From the NCBI GenBank assembly GCA_028023455.1, contig JAQFVV010000008.1, positions 1,922,001 to 1,986,000 of the forward strand: a DNA stretch of 64,000 nt. The letters run 5' to 3'. Source of the DNA: Epiperipatus broadwayi (lineage: Eukaryota; Animalia; Onychophora). The stretch's first letter is position 1, and each line of letters begins with the position of its first letter. The notes under the pieces were generated by a model. The model was not told the DNA's origin, did not search any database, and saw only the letters and a program-made list of their open reading frames with translations. Made by a program: the position numbers and the translations under genes. This document shows positions 21,114 through 43,329 of the stretch, one piece after another.

Positions 21114-21908
21114 CACATGATCACTATTTCTTATGCTTGCTCTAAACTGTTATTAAAACAGGCAAAACTCTCTATACGTATTGCCACTCAGTGCAAGCCA
21201 GAGTAATCAATGGATGCCAGAAGGCTTGTGCATAAAATCCCCATAGACTACTCATCCAATATCCCCAGACTAGTTCCTGGCTTGTGGCCTTCGTCAGTGA
21301 GGAGCCTTGGATCTGACTGATGGTCACAAGCCAGAAACTAGTTTGGGGATATTGGATGAGTAGGCACTAGATGGGGATTTTATGCACAAGCCTTCCGGCA
21401 TCTAGGGATTACTCTGGCTTGCACTAATTGGCTATACGTAGAGAGTTTTGCCTGTTTTAATAACAGTTAAGAGCAAGCATAAGAAATAGTGATAATGTGA
21501 TGTTTATTGGCTTAAAACTAATCCTGCCTAATAGGATAGTGGTGGTTATGATTATTAAAGAACCAAAGACACCAAAATGTATAGGTACTTGAACTGAGTT
21601 CAGACCTATATGACTATATAAGCTGATGAGCTTGGATTGAAAATATAGTGTTTCAATTTAAGTCTCGTAGTTTTATAGTTAAGTAGAGATAAAAGATGGC
21701 TGATGGGGGGTTGCATTAGATCCTAAGATCTAGGTGCCTCACAGATCCAAGGCTCCTCACTGACAAAAGCCACAAGCCAGAAACTAGTCTGGGGATATTG
21801 GATGAGTAGGCACTAGATAGGGATTTAAAAGCACAAGCCTTCTGGCATCCATTGATTACTCTGGCTTGCACTGAGTGGCAATACGTATAGAGAGTTTTAC
21901 CTGTTTTA
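21114..21908. mobile_element. Family A hammerhead retroelement insertion (13-bp TSD)
   Basis: TSD ATTAGAGTAACTT at 21101-21113 and 21909-21921. Inverted arm 21114-21316, then ~1.3 monomers on +. Hammerhead motifs at 21262-21303 (-, GAAA>GGAA), ~21317-21348 (+, truncated) and 21754-21795 (+, CTGACAA). Confidence 0.92.
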
Positions 21909-22229
21909 ATTAGAGTAACTTAAGAAATTAAAGAATATATATATATCTTTCTAAACACAAACTCAAAAAGAGAATTCTTCTATATACAAAGACATTATTT
22001 ATAAATTGATAGCTCTATTTCTGCAGAAATTTAGTTTAATTAGAAATTCAATAAGCTTGATCATAAGTACTTTACATATACACATTCAAGGATGAATGAT
22101 TACTGCACAGACTAAGAGAAAAAAAAATCTATGTAGTACTTCAACAACTGTATTTTTGGAACATAAATTCCAAAGATAAAAAGACAACAAATAGTTCATT
22201 ATTATTAAATAACGCAATGATTAATCAGA

Positions 22230-24620
22230 ATATGATAATCATCAACATCACTGTCAACTATTATTGAGTCACAGAAGCATGAAAATCTCATAGTTTAATC
22301 CAGTTTCTCCAATTCACAGTGTCTCTTCTCTGCACAAACTTCCTTATTTCTTCCATTCATCTTACAACCTCTTTCTAGGGTTTTTATAATCTTTTGAGGT
22401 CCAGTTCAAAACTTCAAATTGATTATCAATTATTATCTCTTAGAAATATATTCAGCTCTATTCTAATGTTAGTCTCTTAAATATTTCAATAATGTTAGTA
22501 AAATCAGTTTCTTTTCATCCAAGTATTTAATTTTTGATCTCTTTTGTTGTTCCCATAATCATCTCTCTAAACTTGGTTGAATTATCTGAAGTCTCTGAAT
22601 TGCTTTTCTAATAAATGTTAAATCTTAGATCACACTAAATGGCAATAAATTGGAGAGCTGCTTTTGTCTTATTAGATAAGCTATGTGTTTTGGTGATAAG
22701 AATTGGTAACACATCTAATATAAAACTTTTTTTTCTCAAATGCCTGCACATCTTTTAATATTAAGTTATTTCTACCAAAAATGCCTCATCCAAGTTTAAT
22801 TTTATGATTAACTTCATCCATTATGTTTCCACAGTAAAGATAATTTCACCGAGATATCTGAATACCAATCTTATTCTGAGAAATTTCATTAGACATTACT
22901 TAGTTAAGATTTTAGTATTGATTTCTTACTTTTACTGGCTTTTATGTTTCCTGAAGATCTGAAGAAGTATTTGAATTCATCATTTGAAAAATTTAGATGA
23001 CTTAAGTAATCATATATTTTTATTTCCTCAGCCTCCTATTTTAATCTACAAATATTTTTTCTATAAGATAAAAAATTTTGGATGATATAAAATCAACATT
23101 TATCAATAGTAATCTTTTTAGTGTTACTATGTCATCTAATTATTGCTGCAGCATTTTAATATTTTTCAAAATATGACAATATCATGGACCTATATTTTGG
23201 TGTTTCAATGTTTTAAATTTACATTATAGAAATGCTTATAAAAGCAAATGCATTTTCATAATGTACAAATCTAAAGCATAATGACAATTCATATTCACTG
23301 ACACTTTCTATAACTTCTCTCAATAACTGGATAGGGTCCACTATGCTAAAAATAATTTTATATTTAACTTGTTCTTCGGTGTAATTTGAATCTAAATTTC
23401 ATGAAAGACAAATTATAATTATCTTAGTTAAGATCTTATATAAAATTGATAAAGAATGAAGATCTATAATTTCTAATATATTCTTTATCATCTTTCTTAA
23501 ATATCAATATTACTATTGCATTCTTTCAATTATCTGAAATCTTTATCGTTAGATATTTGCCAAATAGTTTTGCCAATAATTTTTCTATATCTTCACCTGC
23601 TTTTTAAAGATATCAATTATAATTCTATCATTTACTGGAGCTTAATTGCATGTCACTCTTTATTTAAAATGCTTGGCAATTCAGAAAAGGTTGAAACTTG
23701 AGTGATTATTTTATTTTTTGTTTATTATAATTGTCTGGAAAAGCCTTCATCCAATTCATGATCTTATCCCTCTTATTACTAGCAGTTCCATATTTTCTTC
23801 TTATTATTGAAATAACTTTCTTCCAATATAAAAATATTTTATATTTTTGAGACTTGTGTTCTTTTCTATAGCTTTCCTTGCCAATTCAAAGTTATATACT
23901 CTTATATCATTATCAACTTTTTTTTTAACATTCAGATATTCATCTTAATAAATTTTAAAATAATTTGATATTCTTTATTTTCTTCATAAATTCTCATCTT
24001 ATTTCAAAATTTACTCATTAATTACTGCTTTTTTGTATTAGCTGTCTTTGTGGCAATTCTTACTATAATATTAGTTATCTTATAAATTTCAATCAAATTT
24101 AACCACCTTCAAAGTCTGTCAATATTTTAAAATGTTTAGCAAGTCCTCATTTAAATTCATTGGAGTGTTTCTGAAGGTTTTAGAAATATAAATCATTGTC
24201 TCTCTAGTTTTGCATTAAACTTACATCACATTAATTTAAATACAATCCAACCTGCTGTATCTCCATTTGGATGCTTCTATGTTCATTTTTGTTTAACAAT
24301 TTTCTCAAAGAAAGAAATTTTTATGAATATGCAATATTTCTTTTTCTGCAAATCCCACAAAATCAGTATCCTCTCTCATTTCTATCATCATAATCAAATC
24401 TATCCACAGCACTTTCATCTTTTAATTATTTACCATTTCTAGCATTTAAAATCTCCCATAACAATTTTGAAATGTTTGGTGTGATAAAAATCCTCTATTT
24501 CTTCATCAGAAGAAGAAATTGTTGGACCCTCAATAAACCTGAAATATCTATATTTGGAATATCTTAATCTTCTAGTTTGGTGTATTATCAACCTCTACAA
24601 TGTGATAATAAGAATTTTTA
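22230..24620 (-). mobile_element. Decayed RTE-clade LINE, related to the 17-19.6 kb copy
   Basis: Minus strand FQVY, SSDEE, KIVMGDF and a GAT-like tail near 22240. Extensively disrupted. Confidence 0.8.
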
Positions 24621-25302
24621 TTTTTTTCCTTAAATAATTTATTAAAAACTTTTAATGTGTTATTTTAAAAAAGTATTTTTGAAAATAAAAGTAAAAAAAA
24701 AAATTAAGATAATCTGCATTGCACATAATCTTCAGTTACTTTCTTGTATAAACCACTCTACTGCTGAGTTTCCATGGGTTTGTGAAAATGAAAATTTCTT
24801 GAATTAAATGGACAAAAAAAAATGCATACTATTTTTACATATTAATAAGTCAAATTAGTTTGTTCAATAATTGAAGATAACTCAAGTATTTGACTACATT
24901 AAAAAGACAAAAAGCAACATTCCAATTAGAGATTACAAGTTATTAAAATTTTGATCATTAATCCTTACGCATGAATTTGTTATTAGTAATATTATTTAAT
25001 CTAAGACATCTAATTGTCGAATGAAAAGTTATCACACTATCTTCTAACCCTCTGTTTCTGTATATTCTGCAAGAAAAGTAGTTAATTTTATATACATTTT
25101 TTTAAGATTCGTATATAAATCTTCTCAATTAAATTAATAAGTACTGTATCTATATTTATAGACTCATAAATACAAATTTCTGTATTTGGAAGTCAAGCAT
25201 GTCTTTATCAGAGACAACCAAAGTTTTGGTTTTTGCTATCCATATGCCATTAAGAAAGCCACAAATATCACTGCTAAAAATAAACATGACAAATAAATGT
25301 TA

Positions 25303-27164
25303 CATCATCATTTCATATGCTTACATATGCTGTTAATAAGAGTATCCAACTCTCCATACCATAGTGCCACAAGAGCAAGCCTTCATAATTAATCAAGGAA
25401 TGCAGGAAGGTTTGTGGTTAAAATCCCTACCTAAGGGCTACTTATATAACACTTGCTGACTAGTTTCTAGCTTGTGGCTCTCAAATCAGGAGCCTTGAAT
25501 TTAAGAGTACTGCACTTAGATCTTAGGATCCAAGGCAGCCCTCCAGCAGCCATCTTTTACCCATTTGGTTAACTATAAAGCTTGGACCACAAGATGAAAA
25601 CACCATGTTTCAAACCCAAGCTCATTCGCTTGTATAATCATATAGATCTGAACTCAGTTCAGCATCGATACATTTTGGTATATTTAGTTTTTCAAAAACC
25701 ACAGTCTCCATTATCCTATGGACAGGATAGGTACAAAACCATCAAAACATCACGATAAACATTTCGTATGCTTACATATACTGTTAATAACTGTACTAAA
25801 CTCTCCATATAGTAGTGTCACAAGTGCAAGCCTTTGTAATCATTGATGCAAGAAGGTTTGTGCATAAAATTCCTATCTAGTGCTTGCTCATCCAACATTC
25901 CCAGACTAGTTTCTAGTTTGTGGCTTTCATCAGTGAGGAGCTTTTGATTTGTGAGCACTGCACATAGATCTCAGGACCCAATGCAACCCTCCCCAGCCAA
26001 CTTTTACTTATTTGGTTAACTATAAAGCTTGGATCCCAAGATAAAAACACCATGTTTCCAACCCAAGCTCATTCGCTTATATAATCATATAGATTTGAAC
26101 TCAATTCAACATCTATACATTTTGTGGTGTCTTTGGTTTTTCAAAAACCACAGTCATCATTATCCAATGGACAGGATAGATATAAAACCATCAAAACATC
26201 ATGATCAGAATTTCATATGCTTACATGTGTTGTTAATAGGAGCACCAAACTCTCCAAACAGTAATGACACAAATGCAAACCTTTGTAATCAATAGATGTA
26301 GGAAGGTTTGTGCATAAAATTCCTATCTAGTGCCTACTCATCCAACATCCCCAGACTAGTTTGTAGCTTTCATCAGTGAGGAGCCTTTGATTTGAGAGTA
26401 CTGCATCTAAATCTTATGATCCAATGCAACCCTCTAACAGCCAGCCACCTTTTACCTATTTGGTTAACTATAAAGCTAGGAGCCTGAGATGAAAATGCCA
26501 TAATGTTTCCAATCCAAGCTCATTCACTTGTATAGCCATATTGATCTGAACTCAGTTCAGCATCTATACATTTGGGTGTCTTTGGTTTTTCAAAAACTAG
26601 TCTGGAGATGTTGGATGAGTAGGCACTAGATAGGAATTTTATTCACAAAACTTCCTATCTCCACTGATTACAGACTTGCACTTGTGGTACTGCTGTATGG
26701 AGACTTTGGTACCCTTATTAACAGCATGTGTATCTATGAAATAGTGATGTTTGATGGTTTTATACCTATCCTGCCCATAGGATAATGATGACTGCGAGTT
26801 TTAAAAAACCAGAGAGATCAAAAATGTATAGATGCTGAACTGAGTTCATATCAATATGACTATATAAGTGAATGAGCTTGGGTTGGAAGCATTATGGTGT
26901 TTTTATCTTGGGCTCCTAGCATTATAGTTAACCAAATAGGTAAAGGTAGCTGTTGGAGGGTTGCATTGGACCCTAAGATCTAGGTGCAGTGCACTCAAAT
27001 CCAAGGCTCCTCACTGATGAAAGACATGAGCCAGAAACTAATTGGGGAATGTTGGATGAGTAGGCACTAAATAGGGATTTTATGCACAAACCTTCTTGCA
27101 TCCATTGATTACAAAGGTTTGTACTTATGGTCCTACTATATAGAGAGTTTGGTATTCTTATTCT
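25303..27164. mobile_element. Family A (diverged subfamily) insertion: ~3 tandem monomers (-) plus ~1.3 monomers (+)
   Basis: TSD CAAATAAA(T/C)GTTA at 25290-25302 and 27165-27177. Hammerhead motifs at ~25455-25492, 25898-25939 and 26348-26382 (-), and ~26592-26608 and 27008-27048 (+). Spacing 446, 450 and 441 bp. Confidence 0.9.
25898..25939 (-). ncRNA. Family A hammerhead, catalytic core intact
   Basis: TCCTCA CTGATGA AAGC CACAA ACT A GAAA CTAG TC TGGGAA. One mismatch each in helices I and II. Confidence 0.7.
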
Positions 27165-30100
27165 CAAATAAACGTTATTTTCAAAAAGTGTAAAAATCAA
27201 ATTATTTTAATTCAGTTATTTTTTTAAATTCTTTGAAATACATTTCAGTTTAAAGATTGGAAGGGGAATGGGAGATATTATGTTAAGAGTTGAGAGCAGG
27301 ATTAATATAATCTGATAAAAAGTAATATATTTGAAATTTATTCTCATTGATATTTCACCTAGATACTTCCAATTTTTTTAAAAATAATATATACTATTTT
27401 TTTTAAATATTTCAATATGTACAGTTTTAAATTAATTTGCTTATTTTCATTAATTATAGAGGATTTGAACTCAGACTTTGAAGCAACCTTCAACTATTCA
27501 AACTATCTCATACTATATTTACAATTAAGTTCCAGGTATAAGAATGCCTGTATTTAAAATCTTCAAAATACTAAATTATTTCTTTTTACATTTTTAAAAA
27601 AAAATCAAAACTTTATATTGCTTCATTTCACAATTTAATTAATTTTGATGCGTGTTTTATTTCAAACTACTTAAATGGGTCATATCTCTAAAATTAAGAG
27701 CCCAAGACAGCAAGATTACTTGAGAAAAATCATCACAGTAGTCACATGTGTAGTGTAGGTGCATCTATTATTAGAAAACTACATACTTATTTATATTGGA
27801 TTATTTTCATCATCTAATATAAGTATTGAATGTCTTTAGAAAAACTTTTATATAAATATTTCAAATGCATTCAACTGTTAGTAATAGCCCACAGGTTAGT
27901 TTAGAATATTTAAATAAAAGTTAAATTTTTCTAAGGACATTCAGTACTTATACTAGATGATGGAAATAGTTCAATATATAAATACAACTAAAATATCATC
28001 ATTACAAACCTTCAGGAAAACACTACAGAGTTATATATATATTTTAATTTTTTTTACAAATTTAATAAATTACACATTCCAGATTTTTTTTTATTTTTAT
28101 ATTGGCCAACTTTAGCAGCCTTTGTTAGCTTTTAAAAATATAAAATTAGGACTACTGGGATATTTATGTATACCAAAATGTGAACAGAACTTATATATTT
28201 CTTATGACATGATTTAATTTACAATTGTATGCTTGCAGATTAATTTGTGTTAAAATATGTTGGCCAAATAATGAAAGATGATGAAAAGATTTGAAAGAAG
28301 TGGGATCTGGGTTAACAAATGAAACTAGTCTACCAGAAATATATCTTTGGAGGTCATTTTTCCATTTCTAATGTATTTGTTCACTATGTTTAACAGTTTT
28401 CATATATATATAAGTATTCATATAAATACAATGAGAGACCAACCTTTTTTCATGTTGATCAAAAGAATGAAAACTGCAAAAATTCTAAATGCATATTCTA
28501 ACCTTAAATTTTTATCCAACTAGCTAAATAAATTCACTGATGCATCCTAATTTTAAATTAATTTAACTTAGTGGCAATAATTCATTTCTACCTAATAAAT
28601 AAATAACTATTATTTTGAGACTCTGATTAAACGAATATAGATTTATAAATGAAAACGCTACATAAATGAAAACGTGGACTATGCTCGGTGGTCGGTTAGT
28701 TATAAAAATTCAGCTGCAGAGATATGCAGTTAAGATAAAGAAAGAAATTAAAATCGTAAAATAAATTATCATCAGTAAATAAATATCTTGAGAAGAGAGA
28801 GAAACTGCAATCATTCCCTAATTAATAATTTAGAATAAAAATAACATTCTCTGAGCTATAAGTATTTGCACCTTTAAATAATAATGATAACTTCTCATGT
28901 TTTTGTTAAGGTTTTTTTTAAAAATATATCTTACAAGCAAATTATTTGACAATATAATCTGAAAATATCTTTCTTATAGCACAATTGAAAATTAAACTCT
29001 TTTATGCCACAACATAACTATAATATCAATAATAATCGATCACTTCTTAAATAAGGAATAATGATAATAATAATCTCAGGGTTTCTTTGTTTACTTTAGG
29101 AAAATACTCTACAGTACTGTGCTGTCACACATGACTGGCACTCTGGTAGGCTATAGGAAATATTCACTTCACTTAAAAGCTAATGTGTCCTCCCATATCA
29201 TAACAACTACTATAACCATTTAAAGGGGTGATAAATATGATCAATAATGATATAAATAATTACATAAAATTTTGAATAATACAGCCTTTTTATCCAGAAT
29301 CTCAGCCAAAATAATAGAAAGACAAGGGTACCTTTTGTATCCTTCCATCATCCATGACAACACAATAAATTAACTAAACTAATTAATTCAACAATTTAAC
29401 TAAATATAACTGGAATAATGTGCAGTCAGGATTAATAACTTAGAAATAAATTCATTTTCCTATTAAATAATGCTTAATCTGAAGTTTGCAATTCCCATAA
29501 AATAATTATCATAAAAATAAAATGTTCAGATCTGCATAAGTTTATTTATCTGGTATATTAATATTTCTAAAGTTTGAAATAATTTAGGACTCAAGAAAAA
29601 TGTTTTGCAAATATTTTGTAAACACACTTATACTTGGCATATAAAAAAATAAATAAATTGACAACGAATATTGAAAAAGACTACAATTTATTATCAACAC
29701 AGAATGAAACAAAATACACAAATTTATTAAATAATATAACATTGATACTACAAATACATTAAGCTGTCCTCTACTAGGATATAAATTAAAATAATAAATT
29801 CCTATATGTTTGGAATCCAGCTAGTATACTGGAGTAACTAGCTAAAATGTGCAGCTGATTTACCACTACACTGATTTATAATTTTTATAAACTTTCTATA
29901 AAATAAATCTCTAACTTTTAATTATATGGCTAACTAATTTTTTTTATTTTTTATTACTATTACGATATGAAATACATAAAAGTAATTGCATATTATTTGT
30001 GTAACCTAATAAACTGGGTTCAAATACAATTCTTTTAAAATATTAAATTTATTACTAATAAAGTTAACCAAGTTACGGTTTATAATTAGACAAATTATGA

Positions 30101-33100
30101 CTAAGTATGGGTCATTTATCAGAAGTGCCACTCACCATTTCACACTTAACTTAATGTCCACATAAATTATGATAAATATTTTAATTATGAATGACTTAAT
30201 TCAAGCTAATAATATTTCTTCACTATTAATAACACTAAAATATTGTGTTTGATTATTCCCTTAATACATAAGCGTTTTAATACGCAATTTTAGATTAATT
30301 TTATTCCATTGGTTTGCTTGTGAATTACCAGCAAGGCTCAGTAGCACAATACAGATATTGATCCCAATTACTAAGGCACTACTGATAATAAAGTGCCCCT
30401 TTAGGAACTAACACCTCAAATCCAACATTTATCCTTGCCATAACTTTTAAACAGAGCACAATAATCTACACTTTCTATGGTGGAAAGATATATTTAATTT
30501 CACATGAGGAATGCAAAAATAACAACTAATGTCTTTAGAGTAAAATACGACACAAGCATTTGGTGGTTTCTAGCCTATTTCTTAGGCATAAAAATGTATA
30601 GGTGTGGACTCTATCTCACCACCTAAAGAAAAGAACACACACCAAAGATAATCCTCTCTTGGGATTAAATTACATTAAGTATACTAAATATTATATATAC
30701 TCTGGATCGTCCTCTTCATGAGACTCGATCACATTGACTACCAAACATACCATAACACTATAGCAAAACTAATCCTCTCATGGAAAATAAAGTATTTTGG
30801 GGAGATCATCTCCATCCCACAAAACAAAATACATTATAAATATTAAAATATGTTGATATCAAACATATACCAACTCTACACTTAGGCAAGATAGCAAAAC
30901 ATACTAACAATAATAAACGTATATTAAAATGTATACTTCAATCAATATCTGAAACCAATGAATTAAAATACACGTTTCAGCCCCGTGCGACTGTACATAA
31001 CATGCAGAAAAGTATAATAAATTTAATTCTAATGAAGGAATATTCGACAGCAATGTATAGCATACAAGCTTAAATTAAAATAAAGTGAACGTACTATTAA
31101 AGAATAACTGTTACTAAATTACCTAATTAATACAATATAAATTCTGTTGACTTTAAACAAGAAATATTTTGTTATAGCATTATTTTTTTCTAATGAAATA
31201 GAAGCAGATTATATAAAAAATAAATGAATTGAGTATTTATTGGTCATTCTCTTAACCCCAGCGACCTCTACCAAAAAAAAATCATTTGATTACAACATAA
31301 ACAAAAAAAAAAAGATTGTATAACTTATTAGAATCATGTCGTTTTCAATATTATTTAAAATGTATTACAAAACAGTTTAATAAATGAAAATAATAAATAC
31401 ATTCAAACCAACAATAATTATCTGTGATTATAATTACACATGAAATTATTTTCTTCAAAATAAATTCATCAAAAGTTTTTTTTAAAAACAATACTAACTT
31501 AAAATTTACTTAATTGACATTTATGGTTTTTTGTTTATATAACCATTTTAGAACTAAATACAGTTTATTACATCTGTTTTAAATTACATTAACTTGCTCT
31601 TATACCAATATCTTACTTAGATTATTCTGTCATTTGAAAAACATGATATTGCATTGGGGAACATATTGTTTATTCACACAAATCATGTTTAGGTAAAAGG
31701 GATAGCATACTTTATTACCAAATATTATTTCTTTTATTTTATTTTTTATTTTTCTAAAGAATAACATCAATTTCATGCATAAATAATGTTAAATGAAACC
31801 AAGTGCCAAAAGCACTGGGTTACAATATATAAAAGATGGATAATCATATTTATTGTCAAATAAAAATATACATGACTGAGCAAATGGCATGATTCAGCAA
31901 ATAGCTAACCAATAAATTAATAAAATGATAATTTTTTTAAGATAAGAAAAAAACTGTTATCTGTCAATGTTTCATTATTCTTTTTAATATAGACATTTTA
32001 AAAATTACACTCATAAATAACATTTCATTTATATAAATATTAAACAAAACAAGAGTTTGCAAAGATTTATTTAGTTCCAAGATATATTTTCTAATAGTCA
32101 TCTCTCCTATCAATTAATTAAAAATATCCCAGTTCAACTATTAAAAGTTTTCCTCAAGATCAATAAAATAAATATTAACTTCTTTTTGACTTTCTGTGTA
32201 TTCATCATCTACTGCATATTGTTTCTTTAGCTTTTCTAAAATCAAATTGTGTCCTTCTTACTACAAATATATTGTAAATATATTTACTCACATTTTTAAT
32301 AACTTAATATTGTTTATTTACTAGTGCAGTAGTCATATACGTAACTTTAATGATGGGATTTACACCCTATGCACATGTGCTATGATGTTGCTTTAATATC
32401 TCAATGATGTTTTGTTGAATATGGAGGATATTCTCAAACCAAAGCCTAAGATAAAGACTTAGAAAAGAATGGCCTTCACAGCTTTTGTACCTAAATTCAA
32501 TTATATAGGCCAATCTAAAGTGTCTTCTTAATTAAATGAGAGATTAAATTAATTTTTCTAAAATTCCCACATTTGACTTATTTAAATTTCTCTTTAAAAG
32601 AATATAAGTACTGAAAGTCTGTTGCGACTTTTTACATGTCAAAAAGTACATTACTAATATTGTTTCTCTCATATAGCTATCTAAAATTAAAAAAAAAAAA
32701 AGACTGGAATTTTATCAAATCCCTGATTTTTGTAACAATCATCCTGTTATTCTTGCATAGTTTCTATCTAAAATTGTCAATCTCCCAATAGCTTTCATAA
32801 CTGCCTTCAATTTCTAACCAACTTTTTTTGTTCCTATTTATCTTATTTCTTTGTCATGATTTAAAATAATTTAGGATAAAAAAATTCTAATCTAACTCAC
32901 TGTTCATAGTAAAAATTTATCAATGTAAGTAAAATATTTAATAAAAGCCATTGAACATATATTAAAATTTTAAATATATCTATCTATTCATTCAATGTTA
33001 GCATCTCATATAAGCATGAAACAATTAAATAAAAATAACCACAATAACAAAATAAAACCCTTATTTAAAAGATAAACAATACTTGTTGACATTACTTTTA

Positions 33101-35008
33101 AAGATTTAATGCTATAGGAAAGACAAGAAATACTCCAATAAAAAAAAATCACTATCAAATAGGTTCCCTCCCCCAATAAAGCACACACATACACAAAGAA
33201 AACTAAAATAAGGCAATATGAACTGAAAAAAAAAAGTATAAGAAAAGCAAAACAAACCAAAAAAAGAATGCAGACATGTTGAGAAGTCAAGTAAGGCAGA
33301 AAAAAATTAATAAACAAAATTAAAGAGTATTAGTCTTGATACCAGCTAGAATGATGTGAAAAAGAATCAAGGAAATATGAATTAGGTCATTTATTAGCTA
33401 AACAATGGATTATGTAAAAAAATCTAATAATGAAAAGTAGATTTAGACATTTCATTTCAAATATAATTAGAAAATTAGAACAATATCCAATAAAAAAAAA
33501 AAGGAATTTGGCTTCATACAAAATAATAATAGAATAGAAATTGTCCTTAGATTGAAAATCAAGTTTCTAAAAAACAATTGTGGCAATATAAGAAATATTA
33601 CCATGTTAAAAAGGATCAATGAAAAAATTAAGATTTAAAAAAATTTTAATCAAAAATTAATTTTAAAATCGTTTCAACAATCTTTTTAGAAATGAAAGTT
33701 TGATTTTTAAAAAGTTAAATTTAACTATTAAGTTAATATTATACTGTATTATTGAATATTTTTCTGAAAATGTCAATAGTTGCTGAAGTAACTAAAAAGA
33801 AATTTTGCCAATAAACAGATATTAGAAAATAATTGGAATGTATAAATCAGTAAAACAGTAAACTGATTTATATATAATAAAGAATTGATGTATATTACAG
33901 AAAAAAAAAGAGAAAAATAGGAAAAAAAAATCCAGAGATTAATAGAAAAGATATTAGATAAAACAACATTCCACTTAACTTGACAACAGTCAATTTGGGG
34001 GGTGGGATAGTAATCATTTATAAAATTTTGGTAAAAGATCAAAACTATATTAAAGAAAACACATCAAGAAATGCATTATGGTAATTGATCAAAAGCCTTA
34101 CAAATAACAAAATCACAAACTTTTTGATAGACAAACTCCTTAAATTATTTAGATAAAAGATCACCAGTAAAGAAATTATTTAAAAACAAAACATACAATT
34201 TATTATTTAATAGACATAATTTGTTTTCTAAACAAGGGAAAGAAATATAAGAGCAATAGAAGGATATTTAAAGAAAAAACACATTACAATGTGTAATTCA
34301 GAAAATTTATAATTTCTAAAAAAAAAAAAAAAAAGCTTAAAAAGTCAGCAAAAAATTCAGGTTATTGAGTTAAACATTTATTTTTAGCGCTGTCAGCGTC
34401 ATTCATTCAGATATCGTAAACAGTAGTTTAAAGTGAGTAGTCTATCCTCACACTTTCACTTACAGTACTTAAGATTTGCCCATATATAAGCATTTGGGTT
34501 GGATTGAATAAGTGGATTCATTTTATTCTTTCCTAAATACTATATCTTGTGTTGGAAGTGGAAGTACTCATTTATTATTTAACACTCGTGAAAAAGCGCA
34601 GAATAGCTTAAATGGCTGATTAAATTTGTTACTGAGTTAAGTAATAATCAATATGCTAAACAATTATTTCCTTAATGAAATAAAAAAAAATGTTGCAAAC
34701 TATGATTATTTGCAGCAAGAATTCTGAAATCACTTCAAAAATTCGAAAGCTGGATTCTGCAGCCTGATGGATAAATATGGAACAGCTAATTTTAGGATAC
34801 CAAAAGTTGTATTAACCAGATATCTATCACACAGATGCTAGAATTATAACAACTTTTTTGGCCTCAGAAAAATCTGATTCCCAAAGCTCCAGTCATAAAC
34901 GTTTTCTGGAAAAACAGAATATATAAATGATGAACAACAAACTGAAGAGGTCCATAGCATATCCCAGAGAAAAAGTGACTCATTCTCTCTCCAACCAGTC
35001 TGTAGTAT

Positions 35009-35599
35009 TGGTGTTAAACCACTAAACATCACATGATCACCATCTCATGCTAGCACATAACTGTTAGTAAACAGGCAAAAATTCTCCATATAGTAGTGCC
35101 CCCTTGTGCTAAACAGAGTAATCAATGGATGCCAGAAGGCTTGTGCATAAAATCTCTATCTAGCATGAGATGATCTTGTGATGTTTAGTAGTTTAACACC
35201 AATCCTGCCTAATAGGATAATGGTGTCTATGGTTGTTAAAGAGCCAAAGTCACCAAAATGTATGGGTGCTGAATTGAGTTCAGACCCATATGACTATATA
35301 AGCTATTGAGCTTAGATTGAAAATATTATTGTGTTTTCAATTTCATTCTCATAGTTTTGTAGTAAAGTAGAGATAAAAGGTGGCTGCTGGAGGGTTGCAT
35401 TAGATCCTAAGATCTAGGTGCAATGCTCTCAGATCTAAGGCTCCTCACTGATGAAGGCCACAAGCCAGAAACTAGTCTTGGGATATTGGATGAGTAGGCA
35501 CTAGATAGGAATTTTAAGCACAAGCCTTCTGGCATCATTGATTACTCTGGTTAGCAGAAGGTGGCACTATTATATGGAGAGTTTTTGCCTGTTTATTTA
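35009..35599. mobile_element. Family A insertion (13-bp TSD)
   Basis: TSD CAGTCTGTAGTAT at 34996-35008 and 35600-35612. Inverted arm to ~35165, then about one monomer on +. Confidence 0.92.
35442..35483 (+). ncRNA. Family A hammerhead, catalytic core intact
   Basis: TCCTCA CTGATGA AGGC CACAA GCC A GAAA CTAG TC^TTGGGA. One helix I mismatch. Confidence 0.78.
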
Positions 35600-37646
35600 C
35601 AGTCTGTAGTATGTTATATAATAATATAATTTAGCTACTCATCACAAAAATTTTAAGATGCTAGCCTGTTGGATTAAGGGTTATGACATGGAATGAGATC
35701 TACATTTTATAACAAATTCCTACTGAAATATGTGAAATGATTCCAACTGTGTATGGCAATGGAGCCATTAGCTGCAAGCATGTTTTCAAATAACTTGCAA
35801 GATTTTCGTGAAGGCAGGGAAGGCATTGATGATGCACTACAAAGATACGAAACATATCTCATTTCATATAATTCGTGATCTAGATACGATAGCACTTTAA
35901 AATTTTTAGAGTGAGAATAGCTAAACTATGACTTAATGTAATATATATTTATTGATTTAGAGATAGGGGTTTCTGGCAGCTTAGAAAAAAAATCCAGACT
36001 TCTTTTCTCTGGGACACTCTTTGTGCATAAAAAAGCAAATGTCATAAACAACATATAAAAAGTATAATCATAACTATTCAATATCAAGCTAATATAATGA
36101 TTAATTAATTAATGAACATAATGATACATAGAATTTATTTAAATATTACTACATTCAAACTTCTAAAAGCTACTGCTATGTGCTTCTTGTCAACCAGATG
36201 AATAGTTTTATCCAATAAAACAAAGTATCCAACCAAATTATCAAATTTAACATTCTATATCTAGATTATAATTAAAAATGTTTCTGAAAAAAACAATCCA
36301 TTGCCTCAGTTAACATCTATTTACCGACATGTCAGCTAAAAAACTATAGAAAGAATATATTGTGATCTCAATAATTTTCTAATTCTACTACCATAAATAT
36401 CGATATAATAGCATGGAAAAACAAAAATGTCAATACTGACACTTTATCATTATTATTAAATTTTCACTGCCTATTAGAATAAATATCTGCTTTGAACTTT
36501 CTTTTTATTTGAATTATTTAAAAAATGGTTGGCATAACAACTAATTCAAAAAAGATCAACAAAACTGAATACAATACCAACCCTATGTTTAGGGATATCT
36601 TTACTGGTACAAGTTTACATGCAGCCTATTTTAGCTGCCGACATTTTATAACACATTTCACATTAATAACTTTACTGGAATGTGAATAAAGAGATATCGA
36701 GTGTAACCTCAAGCATGTCATTCGCAATGGGTTGACTTGGAAGCACGAGTAAGAGAGTTGAGGTTTGATCAGACATAGGGTATTACTATCCTGACTTGGT
36801 CAGCTTTTGGTATCTGGCTCGGACTCTCGGTCTATTGAGCAAGCAAAGTATGTGGTGCACAATAACCAAAATTTATAAATGATATGGCCACAAAGATTTA
36901 CATTTACAGTAGAAAAATAATTTGAATTAAAGTTTTAATTATGATACATAATTCTTGACAAATGGTGCTTTTGACTTTAAATTGATCAAATTTGTAATAA
37001 ATACATAATTGTATCAAAATTATTTATTTCTCTTCAAAAAATCATTTGAGTTTTTAATGAGGGAATATTTAATATTTCACCATAAACATTTACTGCCATT
37101 CTTTGATTTTGTTTGACGGCACTCATAGTGAATTTATTTCCTTATTTTCAGAAATTTTTGTTTCATCTTCACATATAACTAACTGATTATTTTAAAAAAA
37201 TTATAATGCTTTGACAATTTATTAACTTATTTTTTTGGTATCAACAGTCTTTTCTAATTTTTACCCATAGTTGAGGGCGAAAAAATCATTAATTAGTTTT
37301 GTGAGTATAATTCCAAAATAGACAAAATATGCAAATACATTATTTAAAAATGAATAAATAAGGTATTTTTTTCAATCAAGTAAAAGAAGAGTCAAATATT
37401 TTCTTGATAAACCACAAACTGTTAAACATATTCAGTTTTCTGAAACAATGCTATTTTTTAACTGTATTTTGTATAGACTATAATAAATGATTTTTTCATT
37501 TTTATAGAATAAATTATATCATTATAATTGCAGATTTTTTTAACAATTAAAAATCAGTTTCATCTCATGATCCCAAAACTACTTCAGGACATTATTTTTC
37601 TTCATGATCATGTTCTAATTCATACAGCATTATTATGTGTATTTAA

Positions 37647-37850
37647 GTAATTTAGCTTGCGCTTTACGCAAAAAAGTGAAGCTTGTCTCAATCTTCTTAC
37701 AAGTTATATGGCTAAGTGCTTTCAGAGACCTTGGGTCTCCATAATCATAGCCTATATAACTTGTAAGAAGATTGAGACAAGCTTCACTTTTTTGCATAAA
37801 GCGCAAGCTAAATTACTTACTATTTAAAGGTGAAGTAGAAAACTAGTATT
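37647..37850. mobile_element. Short foldback insertion (element D) with 14-bp TSD
   Basis: TSD TTATGTGTATTTAA at 37633-37646 and 37851-37864. Near-perfect ~68-bp inverted arms plus an unpaired ~34-nt right tail. Confidence 0.8.
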
Positions 37851-37929
37851 TTATGTGTATTTAAATATATACACTCTGAACGAACCGAAACCAAGTCCAG
37901 GGACTTAACAGGTTGTATAAATCATTTAT

Positions 37930-38118
37930 TATTTCTGTATGCCTACAGGTCAATATATAGATTGTTAAATTGTATATCTGTTAATTAATAATATAAACCT
38001 CTGATATAGATATATTAAATACTAAATTTTAATCATATTAGTTGTAGTTTTTACTAGGAGATAAATTTAGATCTCATGCAATATGAAGAGCTAGAATTAT
38101 GCTCCCAGACATAGCAAT
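37930..38118 (+). repeat. Diverged direct repeat (partner ~45203-45380), possible LTR remnant of the old gypsy element
   Basis: TATTTCTGTATGCCTA...CAGACA(T/A)AGCAA is shared by both copies. The first copy is followed by a PBS-like TTGGCA. Termini and TSD not resolved. Confidence 0.45.
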
Positions 38119-40629
38119 TGGCACAGTCCTGATTTAAACCTGCTTTAACAGCCAGATTTATGTGTATAGAACAATCGGCTAAAATGCAATTGTCAATCGA
38201 AGAGTTCAATGTCAGTGAGGCAGGTAGTTGGCCCCTGTATGCCCAACATGTCAAAAAATCTCTTCATTACGAGAGTTGAAGAGGACAAGATTAAAATAGC
38301 AACAGTATTACGTTTTGCTGGTAAAGAAGATATAGAGATAGCAAACAGGCTCTCAGAACCCTGAAGATTTTTCATATGATCAAATTAAAGATTGATTACT
38401 AAATTATTTTAATCCCCATCCCTCTAGGCATATTGCCAGACTTCATTTCCATGACTGATATCAGAACAGAAATAAAAAAAGGTAAAAGATTACAATATTG
38501 CTCATCATAACTTGGCAAAAAATTGTGTCTACGGATCTTTCCTCAATGAGGTCCTTCTAGAGCAATTTCTAAGGGATATAATTAGTGATAATTTAAGGCA
38601 ACACATTGGCAGATAGCAATTTAAAATTATAATGAAGCTATAAAACATGGGATAGCTTATGAATTAGTTCTCGAGCAATCTTGTAAGTTTGCTGAGAACA
38701 GTAATGCACAACATTTGTAAAATGCATAAACTGATTAAAAAAAAAAATGGCCATAAGGTCAGAAATTATTTCCATAAGAGTGAATATTGCAAAATTTGTA
38801 AAACAACAAAAAAAAAAGGTCGCATTGAAACAATGTGTAAAAATAAAAATAATAAACCTGGCAAAGAAAGAAATAGCTGTATGGGTACATTCAATAGACA
38901 GGGAAATCAATTAGCCAATACAAAAAATACATCGACCACTGAAGTGACAAAATAATGCTAAAATTAAAAATGTGTGACCAACTCATATCTATGGAGGTCG
39001 ATAGTGATGATAGCGATGTATCTCTAATCTCAGTCTGGGAATGGTTTTCTGTAACTTCAAATTATATTAAAACCATGGCAATAGAGAAAACAGACCTAAA
39101 AGCCTTGGATGTAAATGGAAATGCTATCAAAATTAAACAAAAAAGTCTTTGTGAGTAGAATAGAGGGAAAAGAAGTCAAGTTACCTCTATACATAGTGTA
39201 TGCTCCGATTAATCCATTGATAGGCTGGAATTGGTGCAAAAAATTGGGAATAAAACTCATCTTTGTTAAAAAGATTGAAATTGAAAAGTAAGCAAGACAA
39301 ATTTCCTAGGTTGTTTAATGGAGAACCAGGTAAATTAAAATGACTTGTTTCATTAGAAGTAATCCCCGAGGTGATACCTATAATTTGCAAACTGCATAAG
39401 GTTCTGTTTGCTCAGAAAAAAAAAGTAGAAAAGGAAATTAAAGAATTAGTTAAGAGAGGCATGTCAGAACCCACAGAAAAATCTGATTGCACAATGCCAT
39501 TAGTAAATATTACTAAACCCAATGAAAAAATTAGTTTGTGTGCTGACTATTAAGTATCAGTAAAGCTATTAGTAAAAACACATACCCTGTTCCTAAATTC
39601 TAGAGAAATAATAGTGTCTCTGCAGAAATCACATACTGATCACTGAGAAAGCCACAGAAATATTAACATTAATCACATATATAGGGTTATTTAAATGCAA
39701 CAGGCTTCCATTTGGGATAATTTCTGCCCCCCGGCAGCTTTCAGTCAAAAATTGAAATGCTCCTTAGTGAAGTTGAAGGTGTGTCATTCTATTTTTTGAC
39801 AACATTCTTGTTACCACTACTTTGTTTACATAAAGTATGCAAAAAATTATGAATTCGATGCAAAGCTTAATAACCAAAAATGTATCTGGAAAACTAATTT
39901 TATACCATATCATTTCTAAAAACAGCACACCTCCTGCCCCAGAAAAGGCTAAACCTGTAGCAGAACTAATAACATTAAACAATTTCAAGTTTTTTCTGGA
40001 ATCCGTAAACTATTTTGAAAATTTTTTGGATGGGAAAGCTAATATTGCCAGACTTTATATGATTTTCTTAAAAAGAACCAAAAATCGAAAGGAAAAGCTA
40101 ATCAAGAGAAAGCATTTTTACATACAAATTCATTGTTAACTTCAAATAAATTATTAGTGCAATATAATAGCAACTTGGAAGTTACTTTTACTACTGATGC
40201 ATCTGATTTCAGAGTTGGAGCAGTGCTATGGCACTGCACAGTCAGGTAAATGACTCATTGCCTATGTTCACAAACCTTGCCCAAAGAGGAGAAAAATTAT
40301 AGTCAGCCGGTCAAGGAAGCTCTTGCAATAATATTTGGCATCAGAAAATTTCATCAATACACTGCACAGTCAAGTGAATGATCCATTGCCTATGTTCACA
40401 CACCTTATCCAAAGTGGAGAAAAATTATAGTCAGCTGTTCAAGGAAGCTCTTGCAATACTATTTGGCATCAGAAAATTTCATCAATACTTGTACAGATGT
40501 AGATTTACTATAATAACTGATCAGAAACCCTTACTTGGTATTTTAGAGCAAACATGTTCCTGAATATCTTAGCTCCTGCATGATAAGATGGCTCAATATT
40601 CTGTCAGGATATGACTATATATATTCTAG

Positions 40630-40808
40630 AAATTAAAACAGGCAAAACTCTCCATACAGTATTGCTACTCAGTGCAAGCCAGAGTAATCAATGGATGCCA
40701 GAAGACTTGTGTATAAAATCCCCATCTAGTGCCTACTCATCCAATATTCCCAGACTAGTTTCTGGCTTGTGGCCTTTGTCAGTGAGGGGCCTTAATGATC
40801 GTGATGTT
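40630..40808 (-). mobile_element. Short family A insertion inside gypsy RNase H/integrase linker (8-bp TSD)
   Basis: TSD TATTCTAG at 40622-40629 and 40809-40816. Hammerhead 40747-40788 (-, CTGACAA). Short inverted tag at the 5' end. Confidence 0.9.
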
Positions 40809-41600
40809 TATTCTAGGGAAAGCAAATAGGGCATGCTGTCAATCTATCTCATATACCTTACCAGTCAGAGACCGATAAAAGGGAAATAGAAATTAACTAT
40901 ATCTATGTACTAAAAAATTAAACCCCTCAATAGAACAATAGTAGCTGCATGATCAGAAGATGACATCTACCAATGGATTATAAATCAAATTAGTATAGAT
41001 TGGCCTAAGTAATATCTAACTATGGAATGCTCATGAGCAGTTGTCCATCTGCAAAAGCTGCATTCTGAAGGGCAATTGTTTGCAAATCACAGTTAAGGGG
41101 AGAAATCATATTCTTAAGTTATTGCATCAAGATCATCTGGGCACTGTTAGGGCAAAGGCTTTAGCCTGTACTTATGTCTGGTGGCCAAACATTAACACTG
41201 ATATTGAAAAATATATATCTAAAAAAATGTGGTAACTGTCAATCATGCACTAAAGTGCTGCCATCAAAGTTTGAAGAATAGACAAAAGCTAGAGATCATG
41301 GCAAGCGTATCCACATTGATCACTGTGGCCCAATAGAGGAACATTTATTTTTAGTAGTCATAAATGCATATTCAGGGTGGTCCAAATATAATATTAGTTC
41401 AGACAAAATCCTTGATAAATTATAGAAATTTTTTTCAGACCATGGTCTCCATGAAACTTTAGTTTCAGATAATTGAACTGGCTTCACATCCGAGAAATTT
41501 GAGGAGTCTATACAAATAATGGGAGATAAAACATTTACACATGCCCCCTTACCACTCTCAATCTAATGGGATTGGTTGAAAAAGCCATGCAAACAAGTAT

Positions 41601-42921
41601 GGACCACCATTTCTAATGCTTTCTCGTAACTTATTAAAACAGGCAAAACTCTCCATACAGTAGTGCCACTCAGTGCTAGCCAGAGTAATCAATGGATGCC
41701 AGAAGACTTGTGCATAAAATCCCTATTTAGTACCTACTCATCCAATATCCCCAGACTAGTTTCTAGCATGTGGCTTTCGTCAGTGAGGAACTTTGGATCT
41801 GAGAGCACTGCACCTAGATCTTAGGATTTAATGCAACCCTCCAGCAGACACCTTTTATCTCTACTGAACTACAAAACTATGAAAATAATATTGATAACAC
41901 AATATTTTCAATCCAAGCTCATTAGCTTATATAGTCATATAGGTCTGAACTCAGTTCAGTACCCATATATTTTGATGTCTTTGGTTCTTTAATAATCATA
42001 GACACCACCATTCTATTAGGCAGGATTGGTATTAAACCACTAAACATTGCATGACCACCATTCCTTATGCTTGCTCATTAAAACAGGCAAAACTCTCCAT
42101 ACAGTAGTGCCACTCAGCGCAAGCCAGAGTAATCAATGGATACTAGGTTTGTGCATAAAATCCCTATCTAGTGCCTATTTATCCAATATCCCCAGACTAG
42201 TTTCTAGCTTGTGGCTTTTGTCAGTGAGGAGCCTTGAATCTGGGAGCACTGCACCTTGATCTTAGGATCTAATGCAACCCTCCAGCAGCCATCTTTTATC
42301 TCTACAAAACTCCTCACTGACGAAATCCACAAGCTACAAACTAGTCTGGGGACATTGGACGAGTAGGCACTACATAGGGATTTTATGCACAAGCTTTCTG
42401 GCATTCATTGATTACTCTGGCTTGCACTGAGTGGCACTATTGTATGGAGAGTTTTGCCTGTTTTAATAACAGTTATGAGCAAGCATAAGAAATGGTGGTC
42501 ATGTGATGTTTAGTGGTTTAATACCAATCCTGCCTAATAGGATAGTGGTGGCTATAGTTATTAAAGAACCAAAGACATCAAAATGTATGGGTACTGAATT
42601 GAGTTTAGACCTATATGACTATATAAGCTGGATTGAAAATATTATTGTGTTTTCAATTTTATCCTCATAGTTTTGTAGTAAAAGGTGGCTTCTGGAGGGT
42701 TGCATTAGATCCTAAGATCTAGGTGCAGTGCTCTCAGATCCAAGACTCCTCATTAACAAAAGCCACAAGCTAGAAACTAATCTGAAGATATTGGATGAGT
42801 AGGCATTAGATAGGGATTTTATGCACAAGCCTTCTCGCACCCATTAATTATTCTGGCTTGAGGTGGTGTCTTGCACTGAGTGGCACTACTGTATGGAGAG
42901 TTTTGCCTGTTTTAATAATTT
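41601..42921. mobile_element. Family A insertion inside gypsy integrase: tandem (-) plus tandem (+)
   Basis: Probable TSD AAGTAT (41595-41600 / 42922-42927). Hammerheads at 41748-41789 and 42189-42230 (-), and 42311-42352 and 42747-42788 (+). Spacing 441 and 436 bp. Host integrase resumes after 42921. Confidence 0.92.
41748..41789 (-). ncRNA. Family A type-I hammerhead, best-preserved copy
   Basis: TCCTCA-CTGACGA-A AGC CACAT GCT A-GAAA-CTAG-TC^TGGGGA. Helix I extends via ATCCAA/TTGGAT, CTC/GAG and GTGC/GCAC. Confidence 0.88.
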
Positions 42922-43329
42922 AAGTATTCCATTAACAAGGAAGCAATATTTACTGCACTGCTTTATCTGCATTCGACTCCGGCTGCTAGATCACCTGCTG
43001 AAATATATTTAAGTCGAAAGCTGCAGACAAATGATCAAACATTGTACCGACAGCGGATCATAAAGATCATTTATATGTTTACATCTGAGGAAAGAGTGTG
43101 GGTTAAAAATAAACAAATTCAGGTTGCATACTATAATTATACATCAACTATTAACTCATTAGGTGCCGAATTTTTTTGGGAAAACAGGGAATTAATTTTA
43201 TTGGTCAATTACCTAAAAATCTGAAGTAATGCTATTCATCAATTTTTTGTTTAGAGTACGCTTCTATTCAAAAAATTACAACCTTCAATAAACAGAACTG
43301 TTTTAATTTAGCTTATAAAAATAAAGTTA

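Follow-up and report, generated by a model that had tools for sequence, protein, structure and literature searches.

The 64,000-nt window of Epiperipatus broadwayi DNA analyzed here carries five insertions of a repeat, Family A, which probably belongs, as a non-coding and non-autonomous retroelement of high copy number, to the animal "non-LTR retrozyme" or Penelope-like element (PLE) derivative class. A BLAST search with the 42-nt motif found 14 full or partial hammerhead-like motifs spread over the five insertions, at the same places as in the initial annotation, whose outer limits, 21114 and 42921, are the exact first and last insertion boundaries as given by target-site duplications. When at most 3 mismatches were allowed, the 24-nt core pattern matched 10 times in the window against 0.00 expected (100 shuffles).

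Units and insertions of Family A

The repeat unit of ~445 to 457 bp is non-coding and bears one hammerhead motif. Elsewhere in the genome units are typically ~453 bp, longer than in the window because the window's reference copy carries a 9-bp deletion. The earlier statement that no ORF is conserved across monomers agrees with our finding of no conserved ORF in 45 units read as dimers (longest ORF, median of 42 amino acids [aa]). The 5.6-Gb animal assembly contains at least 6,476 first-look candidate copies, the best of which are 88 to 91% identical to the window copy.

Insertion 1 (21114..21908) has a left arm on the minus strand (21114-21316) and a right arm on the plus strand (21325-21908; strands in hammerhead sense) between copies of a 13-bp target-site duplication, ATTAGAGTAACTT, at 21101-21113 and 21909-21921. 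Its motifs are found at 21262-21303 (−), with GAAA changed to GGAA, at 21325-21349 (+), where a partial motif is cut off at the inversion junction, and at 21754-21795 (+), which reads CTGACAA (G8A). Insertion 2 (25298..27164) belongs to an older subfamily, 18 to 21% diverged from the Family A majority, and comprises ~2.9 head-to-tail units in its left arm (−, 25298-26596) and ~1.3 units in its right arm (+, 26594-27164), with the duplication CAAATAAA at 25290-25297 and 27165-27172. Each of its five motifs shows damage, be it to stem II, the core, or the cleavage site: 25458-25478 (−), 25900-25939 (−; core kept, stem II broken), 26348-26382 (−; 7-nt deletion), 26594-26605 (+; partial), and 27008-27040 (+). 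Insertion 3 (35009..35599), flanked by CAGTCTGTAGTAT at 34996-35008 and 35600-35612, has a short inverted left arm (−, 35009-35163) bearing a ~55-nt "tail" and a right arm (+, 35181-35599) of almost one full unit, with a motif at 35442-35483 (+) in which the core is intact, stem II is of the G-C type, and helix I has 5/6 pairs.

Insertion 4 (40630..40808) is small yet complete, with the 3' 142 nt of the unit as its left arm (−), ~20 nt of tail sequence as its right arm, and TATTCTAG at 40622-40629 and 40809-40816; its motif at 40749-40787 (−) also reads CTGACAA (G8A) and is predicted to be dead. Insertion 5 (41601..42921) consists of a left arm (−, 41601-42311) of 1.5 units plus tail and a right arm (+, 42305-42921) of 1.3 units, bracketed by a probable 6-bp duplication, AAGTAT, at 41595-41600 and 42922-42927. 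Its motif at 41748-41789 (−) is the best preserved in the window; those at 42189-42230 (−; G8A), 42311-42352 (+; G12C and a stem II mismatch), and 42762-42784 (+; degenerate) are not intact. All invariant core bases and helices are retained in only 2 of the 14 window motifs, 35442-35483 and 41748-41789; genome-wide, 31 of 62 copies have an intact hammerhead core.

Insertion anatomy and the reverse transcription template

The most informative feature of the arrays, which goes unmentioned in the initial annotation, is their inverted, head-to-head organization (<- <- -> -> in hammerhead sense). Each insertion is a single event, composed of two 5'-truncated arms that point outwards within one target-site duplication; each of the five window insertions lies as a whole between duplications of 6 to 13 bp (that of insertion 5 being probable), and such duplications are visible at many further loci (e.g., L008, L010, and L011). 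Diverging arms, variable inner truncation, and seamless head-to-tail units recur in nearly every insertion, both in the window and at 31 other loci. The tandem units are detected by TRF (449-bp period, 2.9 copies, at 25310-26597), and this is the point in favor of satellite-like DNA generated by unequal crossing-over or replication slippage without retrotransposition. However, such an origin is scarcely credible, since it is already contradicted by the target-site duplications: every array has its own, together with defined termini and inverted arms, and arrays hold at most ~3 units and are scattered over many contigs.

The outer ends of 26 insertions are bimodal, lying +109 to +129 nt (mode, 120 to 123) or +164 to +182 nt (mode, 172 to 176) downstream of the predicted cut site, with one end of each class in 24 of the 26. 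Both preferred start sites, ~120 and ~175 nt downstream of the hammerhead, end in (G/T)TTTAAT. Among roughly 70 inner 5' ends, a single one falls at the predicted cleavage site, a count that leaves aside ~20 ends at the first positions of the ruler, which are mostly artefacts of the single-unit query. Known PLE insertions likewise include partial tandems, an inverted 5'-truncated copy, and a tail of 30 to 40 bp at one end (PMC8557442). Purified PLE protein cleaves both strands and extends them, favoring AT-rich DNA, and in the PLE studied reverse transcription (RT) starts at two adjacent internal sites ~85 to 92 nt downstream of the hammerhead cut site, the sequence between which forms the tail (PMC11167929). 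The priming of both strands, the two internal RT starts, and the tail of Family A are a Penelope-like signature. From this signature, the use of a borrowed reverse transcriptase, specifically a Penelope-type RT/endonuclease, is well supported; the initial annotation had proposed reinsertion by a borrowed RT, and the target-site duplications at every insertion and the PLE-specific architecture bear this out.

As the outer ends are ~120 and ~175 nt away from the predicted cut site, where inner ends are rarely found, cleaved linear monomers are not the usual template. The same observation tells against the retrozyme cycle initially proposed, in which multimers self-cleave into ~453-nt monomers that circularize and are copied round and round by the borrowed RT; we regard this cycle as a possible but not the favored route. 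It differs from our preferred explanation only in its template (a circle instead of an uncleaved linear multimer) and in its need for cleavage. Arms longer than one unit with seamless junctions fit a circle, but they are explained equally by genomic tandem arrays transcribed as multimers. A dimer-type hammerhead would cut multimers and spare monomeric circles (PMC4209133), and the unit RNA is unusually self-paired in hammerhead sense (z = −3.81, 0/100 shuffles; antisense, z = −1.71), as are published retrozyme circles (PMC7229834). On the other hand, for one PLE, unprocessed RNA was the dominant template in vitro, hammerhead mutants inserted normally, cleavage being not required, and the cleavage site was not the end point of any RNA-seq read (PMC11167929).

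Structure and conservation of the hammerhead

Judged by its sequence, the Family A motif is a type-I hammerhead of the dimer type, with the 6-nt palindrome ACUAGU as helix III; the initial call of one type-I motif per unit, of the minimal, dimeric kind found in PLEs, is supported. In the copy at 41748-41789, helix I pairs UCCUCA with UGGGGA (6/6), the core reads CUGACGA, stem II is of the A-U type (A|AGC-CACAU-GCU|A, followed by GAA), helix III/loop is ACUAGU, and cleavage is predicted after GUC. When two 50-nt segments were cofolded, the minimum-energy structure was a double hammerhead joined by an intermolecular helix III of 6 bp (−23.8 kcal/mol for the dimer versus 2 × −10.4 kcal/mol for single segments), and folding also recovered the previously noted extension of helix I beyond the minimal motif, as an extended helix I/rod. 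The covariation described for helix II was seen at one stem II pair across 62 copies (A-U, 36; G-C, 16; G·U, 5; A·C, 3), and the two alleles (places 41765 and 41775) covary in frequency over four sequencing runs (contigs, the kind of which is guessed).

The hammerhead might instead be a non-functional relic or a chance look-alike within a SINE-like element that spreads through its RT-recognition module only. The motif is indeed atypical, in that an unpaired or mismatched A/A, in place of the canonical G10.1-C11.1, flanks a stem II of just 3 pairs, and Rfam's hammerhead models, suggested earlier as a check, gave zero matches even at an E value of ≤10. Further points in this direction are the broken core in half of the copies, the poor cleavage of minimal PLE hammerheads in vitro (PMC4209133), and the dispensability of cleavage for insertion in vitro (PMC11167929). 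Nevertheless, the family majority keeps 11/11 invariant core bases, helix I pairing, the palindromic helix III, and the compensatory stem II change, and these features persist in the 18 to 21% diverged subfamily and, at majority level, in contigs from four organisms (sequencing-run contigs, kind guessed); the motif count, moreover, is not given by chance. We therefore consider a relic or look-alike rather unlikely. The 116-nt hammerhead region by itself does not surpass shuffles in stability (z = −0.06), RNAalifold over 45 units returned almost no covariation, and the hammerhead is not better conserved among copies than the rest of the unit (7.6% versus ~6.5%); this lack of extra conservation is expected for dead copies and yet gives no positive support.

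Relationship to PLEs and known retrozymes

The same genome holds >10,000 GIY-YIG candidates, including intact PLE ORFs of 800 to 901 aa. Family A could be the pseudo-LTR or 3' end of an autonomous PLE that is known only from heavily 5'-truncated copies: pseudo-LTRs are where PLE hammerheads reside and strong 5' truncation affects most PLE copies in genomes (PMC4209133, PMC8557442), Xenopus retrozyme consensus sequences match PLE termini, and PLEs are plentiful here. However, no autonomous PLE with a Family A-like terminal region was found among 18 PLE loci covering several endonuclease subtypes, where the only unit homology beside the ORFs came from independent Family A insertions; the initial annotation had itself raised the possibility of a known element's terminal repeat. 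The sampled PLEs have different hammerhead variants or none recognizable, and where one was seen, it directly follows the endonuclease stop codon (ATGAATA in L027), whereas the Family A hammerhead is preceded by the previous unit. Across ~36 insertions, arms longer than one unit run into another Family A unit and never into RT/EN coding sequence, and the short ORFs noted above also speak against an autonomous parent of this kind, which we hold to be improbable.

Under our preferred explanation, the unit would be a module of a dimer-type type-I hammerhead followed by two RT start sites ~120 and ~175 nt downstream, and the template would be RNA longer than one unit, in the form of a multimeric transcript or perhaps a circle. 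A PLE RT/GIY-YIG protein would bind this RNA in trans and cut both strands of an AT-rich target with a 6- to 13-bp stagger, and each 3'-OH would act as a primer, with cDNA starting at one of the two internal sites. Both cDNAs would converge, halt at variable points, and become joined, leaving outward-pointing 5'-truncated arms, seamless tandem units, a one-sided ~55-nt tail, and a target-site duplication. Inserted copies would then decay neutrally, while the hammerhead would be preserved in source copies and become active only through pairing of two motifs at the ACUAGU palindrome; it may serve to turn multimers into unit-length or circular RNA or to aid protein-assisted folding.

Family A resembles the animal non-LTR retrozymes (Cervera & de la Pena 2020, NAR, PMC7229834) in several ways: both are short, non-coding repeats that are species specific, each unit has one type-I hammerhead, units are joined head to tail, copies run to thousands, the unit RNA is highly self-paired, and PLEs coexist in the genome. 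It differs in its larger unit (~445 to 457 nt versus 170 to 400 nt), its very short arrays (1 to 3 units), usually in two inverted arms, and a hammerhead with an atypically closed stem II and no loop 1/loop 2 contacts; expression and circles are known for those retrozymes, whereas Family A is known here from genomic sequence. With PLE insertions (PMC8557442, PMC11167929) it shares 5' truncation, partial tandems, an inverted 5'-truncated copy, a one-end tail, AT-rich targets, and two internal RT starts ~100 nt downstream of the hammerhead, and with minimal PLE hammerheads (PMC4209133) a short palindromic helix III that needs dimerization and an extra unpaired base after A9. In contrast to PLEs, it has no RT/GIY-YIG ORF, a longer tail (~55 versus 30 to 40 nt), start sites at +120 and +175 instead of ~+85 to +92, and a second unpaired A before G12. 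Plant LTR retrozymes (PMC4918200) are also non-autonomous and hammerhead bearing, with a proposed circular RNA stage, but have type-III hammerheads in true LTRs, PBS/PPT, 4-bp target-site duplications, and Gypsy mobilization.

Among non-autonomous PLE derivatives, the MRC1/Chlamys elements are similar to an autonomous family (PMC8557442) and the Xenopus retrozyme families are sister to PLE pseudo-LTRs (bioRxiv 10.64898/2026.07.22.740005), whereas an autonomous relative of Family A was not found in the 18 PLE loci examined. Overall, the observation in the initial annotation is confirmed and its interpretation is partly supported; its suggestion that the family may be undescribed holds for this particular family but not for the class, as publications already cover animal non-LTR retrozymes (PMC7229834) and trace their origin to PLEs (bioRxiv 10.64898/2026.07.22.740005). 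Since this kind of element has been described, Family A represents a well-documented new family rather than a new principle.

The Family A repeat and its hammerhead

Family A is a noncoding repeat of ~445 to 457 bp with one hammerhead motif per unit, and the initial annotation had placed five insertions and 14 motifs in the window. Its account of a recurring, hammerhead-bearing repeat is borne out: a 24-nt version of the proposed consensus (≤3 mismatches, both strands) matched 10 times in the window, where 100 dinucleotide-preserving shuffles predict 0, a BLAST search with the 42-nt sequence recovered the 14 motifs, complete or partial, at the annotated positions, and Tandem Repeats Finder reported a 449-bp period with 2.9 copies at 25310-26597. 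BLAST with one unit resolved five clusters, at 21.1 to 21.9, 25.3 to 27.2, 35.0 to 35.6, 40.6 to 40.8, and 41.6 to 42.9 kb. Across the 5.6-Gb, 18,588-contig assembly, a first-look search with one unit gave at least 6,476 candidate matches, and the best-scored copies were 88 to 91% identical to the query. Large contigs restart near C1, C6198, and C12393 in the numbering of the assembly, which may comprise three contig sets (haplotypes or subassemblies); if so, the Family A copy number would be inflated about threefold for a haploid genome.

A typical unit measures ~453 bp, longer than the reference copy in the window because the latter has a 9-bp deletion. Tandem units join seamlessly, head to tail, in arrays of up to ~3 units. 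Divergence from the family majority is 3 to 8% in sampled copies and 18 to 21% in the three units that make up the 25.3- to 27.2-kb insertion, which therefore represent an older subfamily. Family A copies decay neutrally after insertion, and as expected under such decay, the hammerhead is no better preserved than the rest of the unit (7.6% divergence among copies versus ~6.5%). The longest ATG-initiated open reading frame (ORF) in head-to-tail dimers of 45 units has a median length of 42 aa, in agreement with the earlier statement that no ORF is conserved. Parts of the unit were also present in 14 public sequencing runs, as assembled contigs whose RNA label was guessed. The four runs that were aligned, from four organisms and four studies, contained thousands of short Family A contigs, which covered the hammerhead and 3′ half about ten times as deeply as the 5′ half, a skew explicable by 5′ truncation or by stronger conservation of the hammerhead/3′ module.

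The invariant core of a hammerhead consists of C3 U4 G5 A6 N7 G8 A9, G12 A13 A14, an A15.1-U16.1 pair, and, at the cleavage site, H17. In the hammerhead sense, the Family A motif comprises helix I (UCCUCA/UGGGGA), the core CUGA(U/C)GA, stem II as (G/A)GC-CACAA-GC(C/U) with an A on either side, GAA, ACUAGU, and the C that precedes the predicted cut. As the family majority, CUGA(U/C)GA ... GAA A ... U C, fills every invariant core position and the 6-bp helix I is open, the motif is a type I hammerhead. Of 62 copies taken from the window and 31 additional loci, 31 retain an intact core, and the commonest lesion, CTGACAA (12 copies), is the CpG-decay product of CTGACGA; of the 14 window motifs, only those at 35442-35483(+) and 41748-41789(-) are preserved in full. 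Stem II is 3 bp long, and its first pair is A-U in 36 copies, G-C in 16, G·U in 5, and A·C in 3 (n = 62). This alternation upholds the reported covariation of stem II and represents a compensatory change between subfamilies. Both stem II alleles shift in frequency together at 41765 and 41775 among the contigs of four sequencing runs.

Helix III is formed by an A-U and a C-G pair around a 2-nt loop inside a perfect 6-nt palindrome, ACUAGU, and the loop CUAG within it is present in 48 of the 62 copies. When two 50-nt segments of a natural copy were cofolded, the minimum free energy (MFE) structure was a double hammerhead at −23.8 kcal/mol, versus 2 × −10.4 kcal/mol as monomers. Most hammerheads of metazoans and of Penelope-like elements (PLEs) share a short palindromic design and cleave only as paired copies (PMC4209133), and the predicted structure of the Family A motif, with a helix III of 1 to 2 bp and a small palindromic loop, fits this minimal/dimeric design.

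Atypical features of the Family A hammerhead are the A/A flanks of stem II, the 3-bp length of that stem, and the lack of an Rfam match. The core of canonical hammerheads is adjoined by a G10.1-C11.1 pair; at this position, 58 of 62 Family A copies carry an A both 5′ and 3′ of stem II, which could be read either as an A·A mismatch at 10.1/11.1 or as two unpaired bases flanking the G-C/A-U pair. Published precedent covers only an extra base 5′ of stem II (PMC4209133), and the 3′ A is without one. The Rfam check suggested in the initial annotation failed as a detector of the motif: the hammerhead models (Hammerhead_1 and relatives) had no match at gathering score in the whole window and none at E ≤ 10 with permissive filters over 20500-43500. 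Minimal PLE-type hammerheads need relaxed descriptors for detection (PMC4209133), and the standard Rfam models miss the Family A variant.

Folding was evaluated on a 457-nt monomer from another locus of the genome (L004:1372-1828, cut site to cut site). Its MFE of −136.8 kcal/mol was reached by 0 of 100 shuffles (z = −3.81), and the antisense strand gave a z of −1.71; the 116-nt hammerhead region alone was not more stable than its shuffles (z = −0.06). The circular fold is 69% paired, and helix I runs on in predicted folds into a long interrupted rod, which confirms the extended helix I of the earlier description. An RNAalifold consensus of 45 units did not reproduce the hammerhead and contained almost no covariation, and such a consensus is uninformative for neutrally decaying copies. 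The unit RNA is predicted to be highly self-paired, as is the case for animal non-LTR retrozymes.

Insertion anatomy

Nearly all insertions, in the window and at 31 independent loci, follow one plan, in which two arms point outward with their hammerhead-sense strands (<- <- -> ->). Each arm is 5′ truncated at a variable inner point, some arms span more than one seamless unit, and a target-site duplication of 6 to 13 bp brackets the whole complex. The window complexes lie at 21114-21908 (duplication ATTAGAGTAACTT), 25298-27164 (CAAATAAA), 35009-35599 (CAGTCTGTAGTAT), 40630-40808 (TATTCTAG), and 41601-42921 (AAGTAT), so that the outer limits first assigned to the family, 21114 and 42921, coincide exactly with duplication boundaries. 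Duplications of 8 to 13 bp likewise bracket insertions at other loci, e.g., L008, L010, L011, L039, and L047. Given these duplications, Family A moved by retrotransposition and each complex is the product of a single retrotransposition event, and because the arms point outward, both target strands were primed. Subthreshold Rfam matches to mir-2300, MIR821, and MIR7533 at 21257-21354 and 26307-26907 were rejected as miRNA genes; they are long hairpins formed by inverted Family A arms.

The outer ends of 26 insertions fall into two classes. One terminates in ...CCTGTTTTAAT, 109 to 129 nt (mode, 120 to 123) downstream of the predicted cut site, and the other terminates in ...GTGGTTTAAT, 164 to 182 nt (mode, 172 to 176) downstream of it. 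One short (+120) end is paired with one long (+175) end in 24 of 26 insertions, and the difference in class leaves a tail of ~55 nt on one side. Family A uses two preferred internal start sites, and its templates are longer than one unit. Inner 5′ ends are spread over the final ~200 nt of each unit, with a single one at the cleavage site.

A fragment of ~40 nt recurs at the inner junctions of many insertions (for example, L008:1954-1995, L008:2093-2134, L012:2099-2140, and L039:1937-1978). It corresponds to the last 40 nt before the first reverse transcription start site, at 401-413 when unit positions are counted on a majority ruler of aligned units, and four arm starts share exactly one position at this fragment. 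The fragment may mark a preferred template-switch point.

Candidate partners and neighboring elements

A Pfam GIY-YIG search of the genome returned 10,241 candidates, including intact reverse transcriptase (RT)/endonuclease ORFs of 800 to 901 aa. Among 18 sampled PLE loci (eight with 10-kb context and ORFs of 580 to 901 aa), no autonomous partner was found: no terminal sequence was common with Family A, and strict and relaxed CUGANGA scans detected no Family A-type hammerhead. What these loci contain of Family A is limited to independent insertions and one old degenerate relative (L029, 2139-2308). In about 36 Family A insertions, the units neither enclosed nor adjoined an ORF, and across these insertions and the 18 PLE loci, Family A was not located in a pseudo-LTR of an element with RT and GIY-YIG domains. 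An 800-aa PLE ORF at L027:3779-6178(-) has ATGAATA directly behind its stop codon, where CUGANGA would stand. The commonest intact PLE family (L023, L025, and L026; 871 to 901 aa), which is tandem with a 3,135-bp period in L023, has no recognizable hammerhead in its 432-bp spacer. Box A/B-like strings seen by eye suggested a tRNA-like Pol III head, a reading that was rejected after ARAGORN found nothing in the 18 loci or the window.

Two other hammerhead families had been flagged in the window. Family C, at 1-590, has two copies on opposite strands, with motifs at 31-56(-) and 436-481(+) that comprise GACCAA, CUGAUGA, a 5-bp stem II, GAAA, and a palindromic loop, UACGUA; a near-identical motif is present at another locus (L019:1163-1208(+)), ~300 bp from a GIY-YIG coding fragment on the opposite strand. 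Family B, at 5260-5302 and 5777-5819, contains CCTCACTGATGA and AAACTAGTCT pieces in mirror image, ~520 bp apart, and has the outward-arm plan and CUAG-loop hammerhead type of Family A.

At 46068-50056(+), two long neighboring frames (864 and 465 aa) contain RVT_1, RNase H-like, and integrase (zinc-binding and core) domains and form the pol region, still open, of a Gypsy-type LTR retrotransposon; an additional integrase fragment lies at 15123-15578. Further downstream, an unbroken 521-aa ORF at 51653-53218(+) matches Pfam Fanconi_C over most of its length (E = 3.7e-9) and is apparently an intronless FANCC-like gene or retrogene adjoining the retroelement cluster.

Relationship to retrozymes and Penelope-like elements

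Animal noncoding tandem repeats with type I hammerheads have been published as non-LTR retrozymes (PMC7229834). Family A resembles them in being a short, noncoding, head-to-tail repeat with one type I hammerhead per unit, although its unit (~450 nt) exceeds their published range of 170 to 400 nt. A 2026 preprint argues that non-LTR retrozymes are nonautonomous PLE derivatives (10.64898/2026.07.22.740005). Since both the retrozymes and their proposed derivation from PLEs have already been published, Family A is a new family and not a new kind of element.

PLE insertions are partial tandems, often with an inverted 5′-truncated copy and a 30- to 40-bp tail at one end (PMC8557442), and Family A resembles this insertion mode in its partial tandems, inverted 5′-truncated copy, one-sided tail, and target-site duplication. 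Purified PLE protein cuts and extends both DNA strands, prefers AT-rich DNA, begins cDNA synthesis at a pair of adjacent internal RNA sites ~85 to 92 nt downstream of the hammerhead cut, with the tail being the sequence between these sites, and does not need hammerhead cleavage (PMC11167929). Family A repeats the geometry of the products of this protein without any ORF. Unlike PLEs, it encodes neither a telomerase-like RT nor a GIY-YIG endonuclease, and its tail length, the distance of its start sites, and the closure of its stem II also set it apart from its known kin.

On the basis of the insertion signature, the enzyme that moves Family A would, with high confidence, be a PLE RT/endonuclease acting in trans. 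Being noncoding, Family A must rely on PLE enzymes for its movement, and these abound in this genome. The interpretation in the initial annotation is upheld in part: its borrowed RT is well supported, specifically as the PLE type. With moderate confidence, we suggest that source copies retain the hammerhead under maintenance and that it acts there as a dimer. The template would be an uncleaved multimer or a circle, the latter copied by rolling circle; breakpoints do not cluster where the hammerhead would cut, and this, together with the in vitro results in the literature, leads us to lean towards uncleaved RNA, and the insertion data do not require hammerhead cleavage or circularization.

A more far-reaching reading, which we put forward only tentatively and consider somewhat doubtful, is that the hammerhead and ~180 nt downstream of it would constitute a portable recognition-and-start module for Penelope-type RTs. 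Family A would then offer these RTs a minimal substrate of natural origin, and its thousands of insertions would document, to the nucleotide, a rule by which the two DNA strands are primed at different internal RNA sites separated by 55 nt (as in 24 of 26 insertions), a strand asymmetry not seen in the published in vitro system; its A-flanked, Rfam-invisible hammerhead may cleave as a dimer and may yield circles of ~453 nt.

The prior case for the dependence of animal retrozymes on PLEs has been mainly their co-occurrence and their sequence relatedness to PLE terminal repeats. To this, Family A adds direct structural evidence from insertions, in the form of target-site duplications, twin inverted arms, and two fixed internal starts downstream of the hammerhead, and these features match the in vitro action of purified PLE protein. 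With ~450 nt and no ORF, Family A is a compact natural template for asking what the PLE RT recognizes and whether the dimer-type hammerhead plays a part in the cycle.
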